NCBI GenBank assembly: GCA_023515725.1
Contig: JALDTO010000237.1
Coordinates: 506,207-570,206, forward strand
Reading direction: 5' to 3'
DNA: 64,000 bases
From: Amoeboaphelidium protococcarum X5
Taxonomy: Eukaryota > Fungi > Aphelidiomycota
This document shows positions 2,252 through 24,047 of the stretch, piece by piece (position 1 is the stretch's first letter; every line of letters begins with the position of its first letter). The notes below the pieces were generated by a model, which saw only the letters and a list, made by a program, of their open reading frames with translations, had not been told where the DNA came from and did no database searches. Made by a program: the position numbers and the translations under genes.

Positions 2252-2881
2252 ATGAATGACAAATTAAGTGACAAGCTTAGTGAGCAAAGTGAGGAAAATG
2301 AAAGACTCCTGTCAGTGATCGATGTGGGCAATGTGGTGCAGGGCTCTTACACAGCTCTTAATACATGGCTGATTGATTTCAAAAAATTTATCGCTCGCAG
2401 CTCAACAGTCAATGTCGGATTGGGTATAATAGTGGGTGGGATATTTAGTGAACTGGTTTCAAGCTTCCTAAAGGACATCTTGATGCCCCCACTTGAATTG
2501 GGATTCGGCAACTCTCTCGTCAATCTATTCATCGTGTTGAAACCTGGCAAATCTAGGCGTGATTACTACACCACTTTAGAAGAGGCTGTGGCGGATGGTG
2601 CAGTAACCGAGAATTATGGACAATTTCTGCAGATTCTCGTCTAGTTTCTAATCATTGTATTCATTCTTTACTGGCTGATAAAAGCATACACCGCATTTAC
2701 TGAGAAATTCGAGCGAGAGCTGATGTAGATGAACATCAGCAGGGGTGAAAGTGTTAGCTAATCATCAGCAATATGTCCTCATTGTCTCGAGCAAGTCAAG
2801 CTGCTAGCATCTAGATGTCCGCATTGTACCTCCTAAATTAAGTAGTAACAAATAGCTTATGACTCCACAGACAAGTCTTGA
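2252..2881 (+). CDS. mscL: Large-conductance mechanosensitive channel MscL-family protein with a C-terminal CPHC..RCPHC zinc ribbon (209 aa)
   Basis: FKKFIARSSTVNVGLGIIVGGIFSELVSSFLKDILMPPL (TM1), NYGQFLQILVQFLIIVFILYWLIK (TM2) and CPHCLEQVKLLASRCPHCTS. Intronless; TGA at 2879-2881. Confidence 0.88.
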
Positions 2882-2985
2882 AATATAATATATCTGCCTC
2901 ATCTGAATCCCGCGTTCCACAGTTTCACTTTCTTATTTGTTGTTTCAACTCCATTGTTCAAAGCGGGGGTTCTTTTAGTGTTATC
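2711..2985 (+). repeat. 275-bp diverged direct repeat, copy 1 (MscL 3' CDS plus 3' UTR)
   Basis: Colinear with 10750-11024, from gagcgagagctg to tcttttagtgttatc. Confidence 0.92.
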
Positions 2986-9682: not shown

Positions 9683-10663
9683 CTTGTTAGTGTATATACA
9701 GAGGTTATAAAATCTGTGAAAAAGAAATGAAATGTGCAAGTACAGTGGAATCTTAGTTTCAATCTCATTGGTAGAATTGGAAGGGACGGTCCTTTAAAGC
9801 CCCTCGTTTTTACACTGAAATTCAGTTCATGTGAATCGTTCTGTTTCAAGATTGAGTTACAAATAATCGATGGTTTCATAGTAGCATCAATATATATTGT
9901 TATGCCGACTTTTTGTGCTATTTATGAAAGCATCCTGTAGTATTATCTCTTTAGAAACAACTAATTACTATGTCAGATACAGGTATACGTTGAGAATTTA
10001 TTTCACCGTAAGGTACATGTAAATTCAGTTTTCTAGTTAAGTTCAATCCTTCTCAAAAATGTTGTACGCGAAATTGTAATTCAACTTCCGTCTACGAGCC
10101 TCACGACGCTCAAAATCCGAGAAATGATGCTTATTCCTTTCAGGCGCACGTAATATAACCACGAATGTTCTGGGACATCTTCGGTTGGCGTCCTGTCCGC
10201 CAAGGAAGATTTAAGACCCGGTTACCTGCAAATCAGCAAGAGCTTGCATTGTTATGTCACGGAGTTATTCGATGGAGAATTAACTTTGGTTGCAGTTGAG
10301 TTGACCTGGCGCAGTGGACTTTTTGCATGAAATACTTGATGTCTATGTGCATATCTTGCTGAAATACTATCGCGCTGTAATTAATGTTTGGTCGCTATAT
10401 CAATAAGTATTTCGTTTGCTAGTCATTGTTATTGCATCATACTGTGATTATCTTTGCGTCTGGGTAAGTTGGGTAAATTGGCACACGTGTTAAGTACTGC
10501 TACGGAGGCGCTCATTGGTGCTGCAGATGATGAAGGGCTTATGCAATGAATTTAAGCAAGGTGTCATGCTAAATTGGTCAAGGTTAAGGTGATGGTGTCC
10601 AGTGCAATGCCAGGTTGAGTTTTTGGGCTTTGTTACGTTGTTGGGACAATTCGAAGATTACAG

Positions 10664-10750
10664 TTGCTACTACGGGGATATGTGGGTACCCCGATGAAAA
10701 GATCGTCGGAGCTTTTTTGAAAGTGTACGAGTGATCGCTGAACCCGCATG
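10664..10750 (+). pseudogene. Short coding fragment (LLLRGYVGTPMKR...), inverted paralogue of 13781-13866
   Basis: The 87-nt segment matches the reverse complement of 13781-13866. Differences in the first half are mostly synonymous, and there is one 1-nt indel. Confidence 0.6.
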
Positions 10751-13780: not shown

Positions 13781-13866
13781 CATGTGGGTTAATCGATCAT
13801 TGGTACACTTTAAAAAAGCTCCAGCAATCTTTTCATTGGGGTCCCCACATAGCCCCTTAATAGCAG
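13781..13866 (-). pseudogene. Coding-like fragment LLLRGYVGTPMKRLLELFQSVPMIDQP, immediately downstream of the Fanzor ORF
   Basis: Inverted homologue of 10664-10750. No intact start or full-length ORF found. Confidence 0.55.
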
Positions 13867-13969
13867 AGTAACAGTATAGTACGAGCATAACGATAAGCAA
13901 TTACAAAACACTTCTATGATTTAGTGATCAGATGTTGAGCAAGGCGCAATATAGTCTCTTGCAAGACCT

Positions 13970-16201
13970 TCATATGGACATCACGAACTCCTTATATAGT
14001 GTCTAATCCGCTTAGTTCGCAGTAACCAATTTCACTTCTTCCTTAGAAAAACTTCGAGACATAACATTATATGATCCAACATTATCCCGATATGCACGAA
14101 AATCACCCAACATGAAGTACTCATCAGCACCAAGACAGTTATGTAGCACATTCTGAAACGGATGTTGTTTCGACGTAAACTCCTCCGTTGTCACGAGCAC
14201 TTACTTTCCAGATCTAAATATATTAGCTTATGCCATTGCAATAAGTTTCATACGACACTTGTAATGGCCAAACGCCAATAGAGTCTTCCGCGTATTTTTA
14301 TGGAGAATATGCCCAGAATTTTATTAACCACGCGAGTGTGTTACCAGTACATCGGCCGTATCACTTAGAACGGGAGGTAGATTCAAACGCTTTCTCCGTT
14401 TCTTCACCATCTTAATAGTCAGAAACTCGGGAAGAATGATTAGATCATAATGCCGCATCAAAAAGTTGCCAATTCGGTTATGCAAATTCGATACATATGC
14501 AGAGAATTTGGTGTAAGCACGACTAATGCCAATATCAGTGGGAACAACATTATTCTTTGATTACTTCCATGTGTGCCATAATTCTTTCTTCTACGCTTTA
14601 AACTCCTCCAGACTCAATTGTCCATTCTGTAAAGCAGCTGCGCGATTATCCATCTAATCTTTCAGAGACTATGCATTGGAAATCTATTCACTCTTATTCT
14701 TATAAAGCTACTTGAAATCAGGCGCAATCGCAATGAATGACCTGCGATCCAAATCGAAGACGGTCATGCTCACTCTAACACCTGGATCCACCGAGCAAGT
14801 GTTTCCAGTTTAACGGCAACGCGCATCACGGCGGCTTATAAATGATCTAGCACCTTCAAGATTCTCATCTGCATTATTCATATCTTGCAGTTGCTAGTAA
14901 TACCAATCAGTGAATGGACCTTATATACAGGAGGCATCATACGAAACAATCTCAAAGAACTTTTTTCTTCTTTTCACGAGCTTGAACTCTCTTCCTCTGC
15001 CATAGCCAAACTTGATGAAACGGGGCCAGTAGTCATTCTTGCCAGGCTCTTAGAATAGAGGATCTTTGGCATACAGTTTCCCAAAGCTCTTGAGGAATGA
15101 AGGCAGTAGGCGGACGCGATTGCTATCTGGATCTACACGGGCATCTTACGCTTGAAACTGGAGCATCTAAAACTAATCATCATCTCTATTTGGCATAAAG
15201 TTGTAGTCTTTGATATCACCCTTTGTATACTTCTCATGAGCCGCATAGTAATACGTGCGAGTCGCATTAATAATCTCATCTTGCACTGTAGATGGCATTC
15301 GCATCCAACGCAATCTTGGGTCGTCATCAGGCACGCGGCACTTTTTGGCTTTGACTTAACTTAGCGCAACATGGTTCCTTAGCGCTTGTATTGACACCTT
15401 TTCTCCTTAATCTCTGGAATCATTCAAAATGTTAATGATGAAATTGACCATTTGAAACTTGAGATCCAGCCATTCATTGAATTTGTGTATGAACTTCTTA
15501 TCAGGGAATATACGAATATTAATCGAGCGTATCTGATCATACTGATTCAGTTCGGCAATCTCTCGCCGATTTTTCATCTTGCCGATTTTTGGTTTCATGT
15601 TTTCCAACGCCACTAGAGATTATCCCGAAAGCTGTAGCACTTTCTTCTTCTTCTTCTTCTTCAAACTCTTAGATGACGACTATTACTGCTTAGATTTCCA
15701 TTTAGCCATTAGAGAGTCTGTATCTGATGCAATCTACTGATTCCGCATTTTGGATTCAATGATATTCTCAATTTAATGCTGCACCTGACTAAAACTTTAC
15801 TTCTCCTGGCTCTCACTTACGTTTTGTCCCATGTCTTTACGATTCAAATTAGGATTGAACTTTGCTGTTAAGGAGTGTTCTGTTTATTAAGATTACGGTA
15901 TTTGCCAGTCCTTGTCAGTGCATTTTAACAACAGTCGTTAATTGAACGCGTCTGTGTTGCCATTCCAAACATAATGTCCAAACCATTCAGATTTAGTATT
16001 ATACCAAGGGGCAAATACTGGAGCAAATGCGGCAAATGATGATGCGCCAAGTTCTTTGACTATCCGAATATCTACTTCATTGATCACCTTAGCACACACG
16101 GAGAGAAATCCGGGAATATCTTGATGATATGCTTAAGTTTTGAAATCTTCTAGTGCTGTCTTTGCAGCCGCAGATAATTCACGTTTTTGGCTTGGCTACA
16201 T
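13970..16201 (-). CDS. Fanzor2/TnpB-family RNA-guided RuvC endonuclease, ~743 aa, intact under TAR=Gln
   Basis: No in-frame TGA from ATG 16201 (alternative ATG 15832) to TGA 13970-13972. Motifs: APWYN..W, poly-Lys, IRSINIRIFP (OrfB HTH-like), RuvC-I TCSVDPGVRVSMTVFD, YDLIILPEFLTIKMVKK, TRKTLLAFGHYK, VTTEEFTSK and RuvC-III YRDNVGSYNV. Confidence 0.9.
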
Positions 16202-16919
16202 TTTCAAATGATCAGTATTGCGATGAAAGAATTAGAACACTGTCAGTAAGCATTGAATACAATGCAATGATGAGATGTGACACGACCAGTCATCATTTCA
16301 TTGTGATATCAATGAGGATGGTCGCAGCTTTAAACCACTCAGGAGTTATTGGTATTGTTAAGGTATTGAGACAAGCTCAGAAGATTGGCAATAAAGTAAA
16401 CGAGTAATTAGATTATTGACTTGTATTGAAGAGTATGTAAAAATATATAGAATCTCATTGATAATCGTATTTAAAATAAGACTAACTATCATACAAATAC
16501 TTTATGGATAAAAAATTTCAAAAGGACTTGGTGCACGAATGATTGATCCGCCCAAGTTCGGCAATCTGAAAATGGGAAATCCCGACGCTCATTTTGAAGT
16601 GTTCCGCAGTCACACGCGGGCGTGCAAAGCCTGTCTGGCAGTCCTCTGCTTAGATCTTGTAAGCATAACTAATTATTCGAACGCTTTTCAATAGGCATGC
16701 TTTCAATCTAATCTGTCAGCCTTCGAAAACGCTCTTAATATTCTTGATAACTAAATTCATCACATGGCGCTGCTGTCCCTTGGTTTCTTGTTTGTTGTCG
16801 ACGGAATGTTTTGAATTTCGCGAAACACTCAAAATCATTATTGTTTCACCTGAAACACTGTCTGTCCTGTCCGTTGTATATAATCGATAACACCCCCTTG
16901 ATCGATATCTGCACTGGAG

Positions 16920-19841
16920 ATGGGGTTCAATTGGACTTATGCTGGCTTTGTGATCGCTATAGCTATTGTCTTGCAGGTCTTTGTCTTTGAGAAGAGTGAC
17001 TGGTTCACTGACTCTCCGCTGTTGTAAAGAAAGCGCCGTTCCCCAATTCCGACTTATAAACCGCTGACTAATGGTACACTGGAAAAACGTACTTACTACT
17101 ACGGCTGCAGACCTCCTTCATACAGACCTCCATCCTACAGACCTCCTCCTCCGCCCCCTCCTAGGCCGCCACCTCCTTCTCCTTAGCCTCCTTCTCCTTA
17201 GCCACCTGCCCCTTAACCACCTACTCCTTCTACCTAATGTGATCGCTAGACGATTTTTGCTTATGGGGATACCTCTTTTATTCAGCTGAGATTGACCAAC
17301 AGTCTATGGGGCTGGTAGAGAAGTAGTTTGAGGTGCAGTGAAAACTGGGTCTCCAGTGCTCTGTATATGAACGCTGTCAACAACATCTTTAGCAGCGGTA
17401 GAGTTGTTGGTAATTTACAAGTCAAGTTCTCTTGCTCTGGTACTATTACCGCCCGTTACGTTGGCTTGAAGTAGTGTAAGAAGACGTTCCGCTCAGTCAA
17501 TTTCCATGTTGGTTATTCCAGCTGCCCCTCTGTTAATCCGAGCCTATTTACCTGCAGTCCTAATGGCAGATCTAATGATCCAGCTTGTAGAAAAGACTGT
17601 GATAGTGGTCAATGCGATGGTAAGGATATTACGTTGACGTTCACTGGTTGGGATAGCAGGCGCACTGTATACTTTGTTGCTCACGCTGTATCCAATTCAG
17701 ATCTGTGCGCTTCTGATGATTGTGGAAGTACTCCGCCATAAACTGTTACCGTCACATCGACTTTGACCAAAACTATGGTGAGTACAGTTTTTAATACGAT
17801 TATTAGGACTAGTACCATCTAGCTGCCCCCTGTCACAATAACGAGGGCCACGACTGTTACTCATATAGTTTCCACGACTTTGACAATTCGTCCTCCGCCC
17901 GTGACGTCACATATCACAAGAAGTGTGTCGTATCCCGTTACTACCACTGTAACTCTGCCACCAAGAACTGTCACAAGTCTGATCACGTTGCCGCCGGTTA
18001 CTACTACTTATACTGTAACAGTTGAAAGACCTCCAGTAACCACCACTTGGACGCTTACCAACACTTAGTATGTCACTAGTACTAATACTGAAACTACCAC
18101 TACATATCTGCCTGCATCTACCTTCACCATAACTGAGACTTCCATTCTGCCTGGTACCGTAACCACTATAACTATCACTGAAGATGGTCAAGTGATTACT
18201 AGCTACATTACAAGCACTGGAACTATTACTATAACTGGTACTTAGACAGTAACTACAACTAATATTTAGTACATTACTTTGGATCCTGTCACTGTTACTG
18301 TTAATTAGCCTGCTACCACCATTACTACTGCGTTGACTATTACTTAGACGTCTTTGGTGACTGTGACTGAAACTTCTCCTGTGTACTCTACTTTCTCTAC
18401 TACCATTTTTAGTACGACAACGTCTACTGTGCTGGTGCCAACCACTATCATTACGTTTATACCTGGTGAGACTGCTCTGACCACTGTAACCTCTTTTATG
18501 ACTTAGACAGTGATGTAGACACTGTACAGCTACATTACTACTACAGAGAGGATCACCGAAACTGTTACTGTTAGTGGAGGTGGTGGTGGTCCGCCAGTGA
18601 CTTCTTACATTACGATTACTTAAGCCCCTGTTACTGTTACTGAGACTCAGTCAATTACTCTGCCTCAGGTTACTGTGACCGTTACTGTTGCTCCGACTAC
18701 TATTATCCAAACGTCTACTGTGTTTTAGACACAAACTTATACCATGACGTAGACTATCACTGAATCTGGTACCACCATTACCACTACTATCTTCAGTACA
18801 AGCACTGTATCTGTTCTGGCAACCTCAACATCTACTATCCCATCCACTACTACCACCTATACCCCTCTGCCTACTCCTACTTGTATCGATGTTGGTGGAG
18901 CATATCCTTTTAATGCGTTCTTTAGTGGTTCCTATTCTGCTAGCTCTGATGTTCAGGGAAGACTGGCTGTTGGTGGTGATGCAGCTTTTGCTGGCGGCTT
19001 CTCTATCGCGGATCAGCTTTATGGCATCGATTAATGTAAGTCAGCTACATTAGTCATTGGCGGTAAATTGGTAAATTGGTTGACTGGTCGTAACTATTAT
19101 GGTAATATTGTTGTTGGTGATGACTCTACTGCGAAGCCTTCTGTACCCAATAACAATATCGGTTATGTTTTGGAGCCAGATTGTTCTATAAAGAAAATTC
19201 CTAATTTTATCAATTTCGATACCATTAGTCAGAAGTTGACTTAATTGTCCCAGAAGATGGCATCTTGGGTTCCTACTGCTCTGAGTGTTAATGTCAAGTA
19301 TGGTTTGATGACCATCTAGGTTGGTGGTCTGAATCGCTATGAAATTATCAATATTTAGAACGGATCCATGTTTACCTAAAGAATGATCAACGACTTTGCG
19401 ATTGAAGGTGCTACCAACAATACCATCCTCGTGTTTAACATCTTCGGGTCCTCTGGTGGATTCGTCGATATGAACATGGATGCGATGATTGACATTCCTA
19501 CTATCTTCAATTTTCCTAATGCTACTTCTCTGGATATCAATGGAGTAGCTGTTCGTGGCATGGTTTTGGCACCATTCGCTAATGTTAATGCTGGACCTGG
19601 TGTTGTTTGGGGCCCAGTGTATGCTGAAAGTGCTGCCGGACCTTTACAGATCAATCTGGTTCCAGAATTTCCATTGTGCTCTAATCCTGATTCTATTTAT
19701 GGCCTATAAACCCCAGCGATGTCATAGACGACAGATAGCAGCAGTGGATCTCTGCCAATGAGAATCAATTTTAATTTTGGATTTGAATTGATTGTCGCTT
19801 TGACTATGCTGCTCTTTGGAGTATTCTACTTAACGATGTGA
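16920..19841 (+). CDS. Surface adhesin-like protein, copy 1 (973 aa): signal/anchor, Pro-rich and Cys-rich N-domain, Thr-rich stalk, choice-of-anchor-A-like domain, C-terminal hydrophobic anchor
   Basis: Open ATG 16920 to TGA 19839. SDVQGRLAVGGDA, FNFPNATSL and GMVLAPFANV are typical of the choice-of-anchor A beta-helix domain. Confidence 0.85.
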
Positions 19842-20400: not shown

Positions 20401-21206
20401 AATCAAAGATCGCGGACAAACTGGTCCAGGAGGAACTTTAATTTAGCAATACAATCTTAGAGTTAAACACGTACATATAAAACTATGAAATATAGTCAAA
20501 TAATTGTTGCAATAAAAGGCCATCGAAAATAGCGTAAGATTGAACAAGAACTCCGTCAAATTATGATTGAAACGGGCTTTTTCAACTAGAAAAATGAGAG
20601 CAAACAGCAGAATTGTTTTAGCTTCACTCTGAGTTGGCGGTGAACTAGCCTCTCATCGAAAATTTTTATGGTTTATTTTTGGGAAGATAGGATGCTAATA
20701 TCATGATAGAAATTTTGTATTAGAATGTTACTACGCCCTGTTATTACTTCCTCGCTTAAAAATGAATGCTGCACCGCGACAAATCTTTCTTGCATGATTA
20801 GATAAAATCCATATTTAGGGAATCCCAAATTCCTTTATGAATGTGTAACAGACATGGAAATCTACATTTCGGTAGCCACCTGTATTCAAATGAAAAAAGG
20901 AGCCCATATCTTCCCTAACACTGAATGCAGACCAGGAGGCGCTCAGCAAAGCACGGAAAGATACGCAGTCTGGCCAGCTGCTCAGTGCAGCGAGGTGAAA
21001 CGTTGGTTTGTTCGCAGCCACGCGCGCGTTTGTTTCAGCTTCTGGCAATCGCCGCTCGGCCCAGCATTAAATTCGCCGGCTGCTTCGTCACCAATTTGTT
21101 TCCGCAAAGTCTCCAACTCATTGTTGTTGTTTCACCAGATTCATACTTTAAACCGTCCCCTTGTATAACAGTTTAAGCTCCGTTGTGAGATACCTGTATA
21201 CTAATC

Positions 21207-24047
21207 ATGGGTTTCAATTGGTCCTATGCTGGTTTTGTGATTGCTTTGGCTGTTGTCTTGCAGGTCTTTGTCTTTGAGAAGAGTGACTGGTTCAATGACT
21301 CTCCGCTGCTGCAGAGAAAGCGCCGTTCTCCTATCCCAACTTATAAGCCGCTGAATAATGGTACGTTGGATAAGCGTACTTTCTACTGGCCTCCTTCCTA
21401 CTCACCACCTTCCTACTCGCCTCCTTCGAGCGCTTCGTGTGATCGTTAGACGATTTTTGCTTATGGTGATACCTCTTTTATCCAGCTCAGATTGACCAAC
21501 AGTCTCTGGGGCTGGTAGAGAAGTAGTTTGAGATGCAGTGAAAGCTGGGACTCTAACATTCTGTACATGAATGCTGATAACAATGACTGCAATAGAGGTA
21601 GAGCTGTTGGCACCGTGCAAGTAAAGTTCTCTTGTACTGGCACAATCACTGTCCGTTATGTTGGCTATAAAAAGTGTAAGAAGACGTTCCGCTAGATCAA
21701 TTTCCATGTTGGATACTCTAGCTGCCCTTCTCTGAATCCTAGTTATTTTACTTGCAGCCCTAATGCAAGATCTAATGATCCAGCTTGTAGAAAGGATTGT
21801 GATGGTGGTCAGTGCGATGGTAAGGATGTGACGTTTACCTTTACTGGCTGGGACAGTAGACGTACTGTATACTTTGTTGCTCACGCTGTATCTAATGGAG
21901 AGTTGTGTGCTAGCGACGATTGTGGAAGTACGCCACCACAAACCGTCACTGTCACATCGACGATAACTAAGACTGTGGTAAGTACTTTTTTTAGTACGAT
22001 TATCAGGACTAGTACCATCTAGCTGCCCCCTGTCACAATAACGAGGACGACGACTGTTTCTCATGTTGTCACCTCGACTTTAATTATCCGTCCTCAGCCT
22101 GTGACTTCATACATTACAAGAACTGTGTCGTATCCCGTTACTACCACTGTAACTCTGCCACCAAGAACTATCACAAGTCTGATCACGTTGCCGCCGGTTA
22201 CTACTACTTATACTGTAACAGTTGATAGACCTCCAGTAACCACCACTTGGACGCTTACCAACACTTAGTATGTCACTAGTACTAATACTGAAACTACCAC
22301 TACCACTACATATCTGCCTGCATCTACCTTCACCATAACTGAGACTTCCATTCTGCCTGGTACCGTAACCACTATAACTATCACTGAAGATGGTCAAGTG
22401 ATTACTAGCTACATTACAAGCACTGGAATTATTACTATAACTGGTACTTAGACAGTAACTACAACTAATATTTAGTACATTACTTTGGATCCTGTCACTG
22501 TTACTGTTAATTAGCCTGCTACCACCATTACTACTGCGTTGACTATTACTTAGACGTCTTTGGTGACTGTGACTGAAACTTCTCCTGTGTACTCTACTTT
22601 CTCTACTACCATTTTTAGTACGACAACGTCTACTGTGCTGGTGCCAACCACTATCATTACGTTTATACCTGGTGAGACTGCTCTGACCACTGTAACCTCA
22701 TTTATGACTTAGACAGTGATGTAGACACTATACAGCTACATTACTACTACAGAGAGGATCACCGAAACTGTTACTGTTAGTGGAGGTGGTGGTGGTCCGC
22801 CAGTGACTTCTTACATTACGATTACTTAAGCCCCTGTTACTGTTACTGAGACTCAGTCAATTACTCTGCCTCAGATTACTGTGACCGTCACTGTTGCTCC
22901 GACTACTATTATCCAAACGTCTACTGTGTTTTAGACACAAACCTATACCATGACGTAGACTATCACTGAATCTGGTACCACCATTACCACTACTATCTTC
23001 AGTACAAGCACTGTATCTGTTCTGGCAACCTCAACATCTACTATCCCATCCACTACTACCACCTATACCCCTCTGCCTACTCCTACTTGTATCGATGTTG
23101 GTGGAGCATATCCTTTTAATGCCTTCTTTAGTGGTTCCTATTCTGCTAGCTCTGATGTTCAGGGAAGACTGGCTGTTGGTGGTGATGCAGCTTTTGCTGG
23201 CGGCTTCTCGATCGCGGATCAGCTTTATGGCATCGATTAATGTAAGTCAGCTACATTAGTCATTGGCGGTAAATTGGTAAATTGGTTGACTGGTCGTAAC
23301 TATTATGGTAATATTGTTGTTGGTGATGACTCTACTGCGAAGCCTTCTGTACCCAACAATAATATCGGTTATGTTTTGGAGCAGGAGTGTAGCATAAAAA
23401 AAGTTCCTAACTTTATTGATTTTACTGCTATTAGTCAAAAGTTGATCCAGTTGTCACAGAAGATGGCATCTTGGGTTCCTACTACTCTGAATGTTAATGT
23501 CAGGTATGGTTTGATGACTATCTAGGTTGGTGGTCTTAATCGCTATGAAGTGATTAATATTTAGAATGGATCCATGTTTACTGATAGAGTGGTCAATAAT
23601 TTTGCGATTAAAGGTGCTACTAACAATACCATCCTGGTGTTTAACATTTTTGGGTCCGCTGGTGGATTCGTCAATATGAACATGGAATCGCTCAAGGATA
23701 TTCCTACTATCTTCAACTTTCCTAATGCCACATCTCTACAAATCAGTGGTGTAGGTGTCCGTGGTATGGTTATGGCACCACTTGCTAACGTTAATGCTGG
23801 ACCTGGTGTAGTCTGGGGACCATTTTTTGCTGAGAGTGCAGCTGGACCCTTGCAGATTAATCTGGTTCCGAATTTTCCTCTGTGTGCAAATCCGGATTCT
23901 ATTTATGGTTTACAAACCGCAGCGATGTCTCAGTAGACTAGCAGCAGCAGTGGATCTTAGCCTTTAAGAATCAATTTTAACTTTGGATTGGAAGTGATCG
24001 TAGCTCTGACCGTGCTGCTTTTTGGAGTGTTTTATTTAACGATGTGA
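21207..24047 (+). CDS. Surface adhesin-like protein, tandem copy 2 (946 aa)
   Basis: Same architecture as 16920-19841 with a shorter Pro-rich linker. ATG 21207 to TGA 24045. Confidence 0.85.

Follow-up and report, generated by a model that had tools for sequence, protein, structure and literature searches.

A zinc-ribbon-less Fanzor2-type protein as the sole gene of a young, probably IS607-derived transposon in Amoeboaphelidium protococcarum

What is encoded by a reading frame that appears only as scraps under the standard genetic code, and how has the DNA carrying it spread? These questions are raised by a minus-strand frame of Amoeboaphelidium protococcarum X5 located in the window, namely, the whole stretch of 64,000 nucleotides that was analysed. 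An earlier note on this DNA had proposed an intact Fanzor2-type RNA-guided nuclease written in the TAR=Gln code of the host. In this study, the frame, its protein and the copies of the surrounding DNA were investigated computationally.

The frame (window:13970-16201, minus strand) comprises 744 codons, including 21 TAA, 12 TAG and one TGA, which is terminal and leaves 743 sense codons. These 33 TAR codons and the terminal TGA confirm the earlier description of about 30 TAA or TAG codons without an internal TGA, and translation with table 6 gave a single uninterrupted protein of 743 aa. The two standard-code scraps described earlier hold as ORFs with start codons, but several stop-free pieces of 60-78 aa also exist. 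None of 200 shuffles of the region contained a TGA-free frame of 743 codons (maximum 569), and 61 frames of at least 200 aa were found in the window under table 6 versus 7 under the standard code. TAR accounts for 59% of the Gln codons of the ORF and for 26-66% in long host ORFs; this host-like share, together with a paralog family saturated at synonymous sites, agrees with the proposal of long residence in the host code. The UAR=Gln code of A. protococcarum has already been published (PMC5304391).

13970..16201, minus strand: ORF of the Fanzor2-type protein, 743 aa in the TAR=Gln code, from sequence, profile and fold matches
14669..14671, minus strand: TAG codon 511, aligned with Gln in 12 of 13 standard-code homologs

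At the level of the alignment, this TAG facing a Gln column is a direct sign that TAG is read as Gln. The motifs of the predicted nuclease were assigned by alignment, and all four motifs named in the earlier note were located where it had placed them, with the D-E-D triad present and intact.

14786..14788, minus strand: Asp472 of RuvC-I, in the DPG motif (SVDPG)
14429..14431, minus strand: Pro591 of IILPEF, near-invariant in the clade, at the presumed position of the canonical TnpB Glu
14183..14185, minus strand: relocated RuvC-II Glu673 (E-alt), seven residues N-terminal of the first zinc-ribbon Cys position
14084..14086, minus strand: Asp706 of RuvC-III
15641..15661, minus strand: poly-lysine run, aa 181-187, with low pLDDT at 173-185

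E673 and R705-D706 align with the homologs and with ApmFz2, and the DPG motif and relocated Glu are published marks of Fanzors (PMC10711439). With a 78-aa piece as query, 30 relatives were retrieved, many with TnpB domains and some with an IS607 TnpA domain in front. The best PDB match of the clade profile was ApmFz2 (E 4.6e-17). The structure model was that of an NCBI copy (P0042) with 95% identity (pLDDT 82), and the window protein was searched as pieces. Foldseek placed ApmFz2 first for this model (E 1.2e-11); VIA also ranked ApmFz2 (Z 16.5, rmsd 4.3, 407 residues aligned, model 63-722) above ISDra2 TnpB (Z 14.7), with an aligned region that takes in part of the N-terminal extension. Fold matches of the model were limited to TnpB, Cas12f and Fanzor2. 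ApmFz2 is the best PDB match by both sequence and fold, and the closest fold of the 95%-identical copy makes it near certain, as modelled, that the protein is of Fanzor2 type. In the HMM and structure comparisons proposed earlier, profile and fold pointed to ApmFz2; the NCBIfam TnpB models gave no match for the family, Pfam scores remained below the cut-off and the TNB domain lacked HMM support. Pfam searches of ten stop-free pieces yielded zero matches. The protein was grouped with TnpA-linked fungal relatives in a tree that contains no characterised Fanzor2 and has long outgroup branches. The poly-lysine run is likely a nuclear localisation signal, and by analogy the protein is predicted to work like ApmFz2 or IS607 TnpB.

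The protein departs from most relatives in one segment of the nuclease domain.

14090..14164, minus strand: zinc-ribbon segment from which all four ligand cysteines are absent (KQHPF; KQCPFC in relatives), from the alignment

The zinc-less state is common to the window family (family A), a paralog family of the same genome (family C) and a Tilletia relative, and the trio groups at 93/88. The segment is still modelled at pLDDT 73-92 in the 95%-identical copy, and the E-to-D spacing is 33 aa versus 34 aa in ApmFz2. A C4 zinc ribbon between RuvC-II and RuvC-III was described as a strict motif (PMC3627910) and as present in 'many' Fanzor members (PMC10711439); the protein is classed as a Fanzor2 variant because the ribbon is missing. 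The expectation that standard-code mining would miss it was not borne out, since NCBI nr already holds the family, correctly translated with Gln at TAR, as a 31-member cluster of hypothetical proteins. A published mining pattern demands two CxxC (PMC10711439), and the family was probably overlooked through zinc-ribbon loss, a likelier cause than the genetic code. Current mining has a blind spot here, as this clade is passed over by patterns and HMMs that depend on the zinc ribbon. 'Fanzor' and 'Amoeboaphelidium' occur together in the main text of no paper found, supplements being searchable only in part; a supplementary Fanzor table includes, in its accessible part, the sister species A. occidentale (PMC10432273).

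The earlier note missed that the ORF is the sole gene of a young transposon with defined ends and a predicted RNA scaffold at its right end.

13781..16551, minus strand: whole element, 2,771 bp, one ORF, starting GCGGATC and ending CACATG, from copy comparison and the empty site

The genome search for other copies, as the earlier note had advised, recovered at least 23 full-length copies, of which 9 retain the full ORF and triad and 14 of 23 are broken; many large contigs carry element copies flanked by host genes. Identity between the window copy and 20 of the 23 full copies is 98.8-99.6%. Compared with the most distant intact copy, dN was 0.023 and dS 0.058; compared with family C, dN was 0.47 and dS was saturated; among the youngest copies, dN was about equal to dS. 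These values show purifying selection over the deeper divergences and near-neutrality among the newest copies, and the element has recently spread to about 25 genome sites. Partial-plus-full tandem copies joined at N gaps (G000:C244:154859-160459 and C154:389715-394240) may be assembly artefacts. Just upstream of the window element, two tandem paralogs of about 950-970 codons with proline-rich repeats were observed at 16920-19841 and 21189-24047.

Two further families, B and C, are present in the same genome. Family B, a deletion derivative of 1.17 kb, numbers about 13-15 copies and shares with family A little more than the left-end motif and the final 85 nt. Family C is a zinc-less 738-aa paralog with 48% identity, found here as a single copy (G000:C179:334124-336337; L063, L066) and in a second assembly (GCA_023515745.1) at two different loci, with an A-rich, GG left flank as in family A. 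One family-B relic lies within the window.

10239..10750, plus strand: family-B relic, 5'-truncated, with a scaffold copy at 10660-10750, from sequence comparison

The right flank of this relic is 85% identical to window 2712-2985, with 4 mismatches among guide bases 1-16; the latter stretch looks like an empty paralog because its upstream bases fit the family target motif. The relic insertion appears old, since a matching relic exists on the homeologous contig. Two other family-B copies are interrupted: one contains a nested 2.0-kb element (L047, G000:C214:205977-207958) that appears MULE-like by its GC-rich terminal inverted repeats and duplication of about 9 bp, and the other is split near its 3' end by a 7.5-kb insertion (G000:C207:35815-43309).

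The ends and flanks were compared among the copies to characterise the insertion sites.

16552..16560, minus strand: host target sequence to the left of the element, with the family consensus AAAAWWKNG, of which the window copy has two of the A's
16531..16547, minus strand: left subterminal inverted-repeat arm, 5 nt from the end, matching the right arm at 14 of 17 positions
13792..13808, minus strand: right subterminal inverted-repeat arm, 12 nt from the end, inside the predicted RNA scaffold

Neither perfect TIRs nor TSDs were found at the element copies, and the flanks differ at every site save one duplicated pair. Across 25 left flanks, A was counted 17, 22, 24 and 25 times at -10 to -7 (25/25 at -7, p about 5e-14 for an A background of 0.29), followed by W at -6 and -5, K at -4, and G at -2 (22/25) and -1 (23/25). 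After the right end, G occurred in 23 of 24 copies, and the next base was free (G6 T7 A7 C4). Family C has an inverted repeat of its own sequence (13/13) at unequal distances from the ends. When the element is taken to extend from the final G on the left up to the fixed G on the right, the homeologous empty site is gapless at the junction, and it is also present in another run; the empty paralog of the family-B flank obeys the same junction rule, and both empty sites fit a G-N core. The contig with the homeologous site (G000:C192, L041) carries a second copy of the region, at 84-89% identity and without the element, in which one extra base falls at guide position 8; two diverged subgenomes appear to coexist in this genome.

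IS607 elements are characterised by the absence of TSDs, a G-G crossover and offset inverted repeats (PMC6188088) and by a right-flanking base that is fixed and serves as scaffold (PMC10711439). IS607 cores may be mismatched (10.1101/2023.11.20.567912), and a one-sided strict A-tract has not been described for IS607 targets (PMC6188088). Judged by sequence, the ends are of IS607 type, with the strict GG relaxed and the A-tract as a new trait. IS200/IS605 membership was rejected: the PF01797 profile of the Y1 transposase gave no match, and the base 3' of the right end is fixed, not variable.

IS607 ancestry, as the earlier note had suggested, is upheld by relatives that carry an IS607 TnpA, and the protein itself retains a domain related to the frame that overlaps this gene.

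15833..16201, minus strand: N-terminal domain, aa 1-123, with the APVFAPWYN motif, homologous to the frame overprinting tnpA in intact IS607 relatives

The overprinted frame matched the Fanzor frame of the window at E 3e-14, and the other window frames were without TnpA signal; the homology of aa 1-123, combined with the missing TnpA signal, indicates that tnpA was lost and the overprinted domain kept. By these sequence comparisons, the N-terminal domain goes back to the frame printed over a tnpA that is now dead. Overlap of the Fanzor N-terminus and tnpA was seen at a single locus without splicing in an intact relative. When folded alone, the domain reached pLDDT 61, with generic helical bundles only as matches (best Z 6.3) and no transposase-like fold among them. 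At L058:994-1690 and L064:5001-5691, a eukaryotic IS607 tnpA has an apparent intron in the resolvase domain, and the Fanzor N-terminus overprints both sides.

The right end was analysed as a candidate omegaRNA.

13781..13857, minus strand: predicted omegaRNA 3' core, H-type pseudoknot and stem-loop
13838..13841 and 13853..13856, minus strand: arms of the predicted hairpin, of which loop 13844-13851 would pair with terminal 13781-13788
13795 to 13829, minus strand: predicted scaffold stem-loop
13761..13780, minus strand: predicted guide, formed by the host flank beyond the right end, matching the empty allele by construction and placed from TnpB and Fanzor biology

The 85-nt right-end block is predicted to fold into a GGGG/CCCC hairpin with a loop that would pair with the terminal 8 bases. 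This predicted pseudoknot was found in all ten element ends from seven families of differing sequence, at a shuffle fraction of 0.004-0.075 each. Among families A, B and C, 95% of alignment cells pair, above all 500 shuffles and all slid controls, which is no probability because the aligned sequences are related; the figure undercounts the pseudoknot, as family C is one column out of register. Rfam gave no match to the right end, and folding without the pseudoknot gave z-scores near zero, no better than shuffles. A pseudoknot beside the guide is common to TnpB and Fanzor2 (PMC10711439) and absent from Fanzor1, and by this analogy the right-end block is predicted to be an omegaRNA scaffold adjoining a variable guide. 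Read depth peaked in the right-end bin in two of four runs, a peak that carries no weight because the runs are contigs and the right end is shared by 44 loci; none of the runs on record containing the element is recorded as RNA. Neighbouring adhesin-like genes were rejected as guide targets, with 3-4 mismatches in 16, no upstream A-tract and similarity at about chance level.

IS607 TnpA was searched for exon by exon in the assembly, and none was found with seven queries (PF00239, NF033518, PF00376, P0004 1-135, P0059 and two TnpA exon profiles). A control query with 41-44% identity and four in-frame TAR codons recovered every copy, and the TnpA query retains 42-54% identity even to distant TnpAs; given these values, a cognate TnpA should have been detected unless intron-split or unassembled. 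No named A. protococcarum protein occurred among the best 120 TnpA matches, which is weak evidence. The TnpA frame of the element itself is dead, leaving no autonomous IS607 feature in cis, and the scaffold-bearing ends (at least 44 from 150 scored among 1319 candidates) all belong to family A, B or C and to TnpA-less elements. The tyrosine recombinase domain PF00589 was observed at one locus only (G000:C249:842461-842766, 30 bits, 3 TAG); family profile searches of this genome can miss divergent genes.

We consider it probable, largely by analogy, that the element is a non-autonomous IS607-derived transposon with a Fanzor2 RNA-guided nuclease, moved by a transposase in trans and aided in copy gain by guide-directed cutting. 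Following IS607 and TnpB biology, a serine transposase acting in trans would excise the element in the form of a GG-core circle, and insertion at a G-N target core would leave XGG at the left junction and GN at the right junction without duplication. A transcript running off the right end would become the omegaRNA, in which the scaffold stops at the fixed G and the guide is host flank. Once imported into the nucleus, the protein would cleave the unoccupied donor allele beside a TAM that ends in G (about KNG, with the A-tract as a possible extension), and repair from the filled sister chromatid would restore the element, turning cut-and-paste into net copy gain. Empty-donor cutting with restoring repair has been shown for bacterial IS607 TnpB (10.1101/2023.11.20.567912). 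The transposase in trans might have been recently lost, have escaped assembly or have a source beyond this genome. The A-tract reflects either what the transposase prefers or a TAM of greater length; the latter could apply because copies at cleavable sites would be those retained. Against the preferred reading count the TnpA searches without a match, the TnpA-less state of every element with a scaffold-bearing end, the loss of a zinc ribbon that belonged to the original family motif, the A-tract foreign to described IS607 targets, runs with the element of which none is recorded as RNA, and a scaffold that, pseudoknot aside, folds no better than shuffles.

It seems unlikely that the same Fanzor2 and omegaRNA are carried by another mover, such as a Crypton-like tyrosine recombinase, another enzyme, or target capture by the Fanzor N-terminus at the A-tract. 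Such a mover would suit the missing TnpA despite a very young burst, a TnpA loss that looks old (families A, B, C and the Tilletia sister are all without it), the strict A-tract, the tyrosine recombinase domain in the genome and the different termini of the Tilletia sister element. However, the junctions fit a 2-bp serine-type crossover, and the offset repeats are typical of IS607. A Tn916-like tyrosine mechanism would leave a variable coupling sequence, and none is present at the right end of any copy. RuvC cuts well downstream of the TAM; such a cut would be far from the junction, which speaks against the Fanzor as mover, as does an N-terminal domain without a transposase-like fold (best Z 6.3).

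A similarly small share of probability falls to a protein that binds guide and DNA and, through zinc loss, only nicks or no longer cuts, being an RNA-guided binder or a passenger. All four zinc ligands are gone, the TNB domain is without HMM support, and the youngest copies show dN about equal to dS with 14 of 23 broken; yet families A and C and Tilletia retain the D-E-D triad across saturated synonymous divergence, the E-D spacing of 33 aa is close to the 34 aa of ApmFz2 in a segment of pLDDT 73-92, and transposon copies normally decay neutrally once inserted. We regard as decidedly doubtful the wider proposal that the zinc-less lineage (aphelid, Tilletia) transposes without an IS607 transposase, through another recombinase acting on the ends or a Fanzor that reads the A-tract via its overprint-born domain.

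Spread by homing or gene conversion to guide-like ectopic sites without a transposase would fit a nuclease with a guide and no transposase found, but is very improbable and already largely refuted by the unrelated flanks: among 26 right flanks, no pair shares 10 of 14 matching bases, nothing is related beyond the short motif, and the junctions are base-precise. A bacterial contaminant, or a DDE transposase mistaken for RuvC (single-ORF multi-copy elements often being DDE transposons), is barely conceivable and is refuted by host-gene neighbours on many large contigs, the TAR=Gln code, ends without TIR or TSD, and fold matches to TnpB, Cas12f and Fanzor2 only.

The preferred reading, a TnpA-less IS607 derivative with a Fanzor2, provides test cases of whether a Fanzor2 can cut without a zinc ribbon, of whether a TAM can reach 6-9 bases upstream, which standard 6N libraries would miss, and of how such a derivative spreads in a nucleus. 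The TAM and omegaRNA are predictable before any experiment, because the protein, the scaffold boundary and 25 insertion sites with their guides come from one genome.

Compared with known systems, Fanzor1 (SpuFz1 type) is likewise eukaryotic with a relocated Glu. The Fanzor1 families of this genome have a zinc ribbon, a different RuvC context and a weak match to the clade profile (E 1e-5 to 1e-6); 36 zinc-ribbon TnpB-domain matches were observed in the genome, including a multi-copy Fanzor1-type family (L021-L040). Fanzor1 lacks the pseudoknot and is carried by TIR/TSD or Helitron elements, unlike the window element. Fanzor1 membership was rejected on a fold nearer ApmFz2, the pseudoknot, the absence of TIR and TSD and the weak match of the Fanzor1 families to the clade profile.

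ApmFz2, a mimivirus Fanzor2 (PDB 9B0L, PMC11832414), has in common with this protein the DPG motif, relocated Glu, N-terminal extension and basic NLS-like stretch, as well as a pseudoknotted omegaRNA beside the guide and a G-rich flank (its TAM is GGG). In contrast, ApmFz2 has 520 aa versus 743 aa here, with 17% identity, and its zinc finger is missing here; the pseudoknot range is 71 nt here versus about 200 nt; and here the element is nuclear and multi-copy, without tnpA, in the TAR=Gln code and with an A-tract in its target motif. IS607, ISXfa1 and CboIStron (PMC6188088, PMC10711439, 10.1101/2023.11.20.567912) resemble the element in having no TIR or TSD, an offset subterminal repeat, a G-G circle core, which is predicted here, a fixed right-flanking scaffold base and, in many copies, a TGGG-like left flank; the differences here are no tnpA in cis or found in trans, a G-N rather than strict GG core and the upstream A-tract.

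The fungal IS607-Fanzor2 clade (Borealophlyctis nickersoniae, Tilletia spp. and soil metagenome contigs) shows 24-30% identity over most of the protein, with the same pseudoknot and overprinted N-terminal motif, whereas most members have a zinc ribbon and several have tnpA, in two cases with an intron. The element of Tilletia, a genus of smut fungi, is zinc-less, TnpA-less, about 2.79 kb and multi-copy like the window element, but its termini differ (L059, L070, L071), and the patchy aphelid and Tilletia distribution may reflect horizontal transfer. Across these comparisons, the enzyme belongs to a known class and its proteins are publicly available; the departures are the zinc loss, the overprint-derived domain, the extended target motif and a burst for which no transposase was found with the seven queries.
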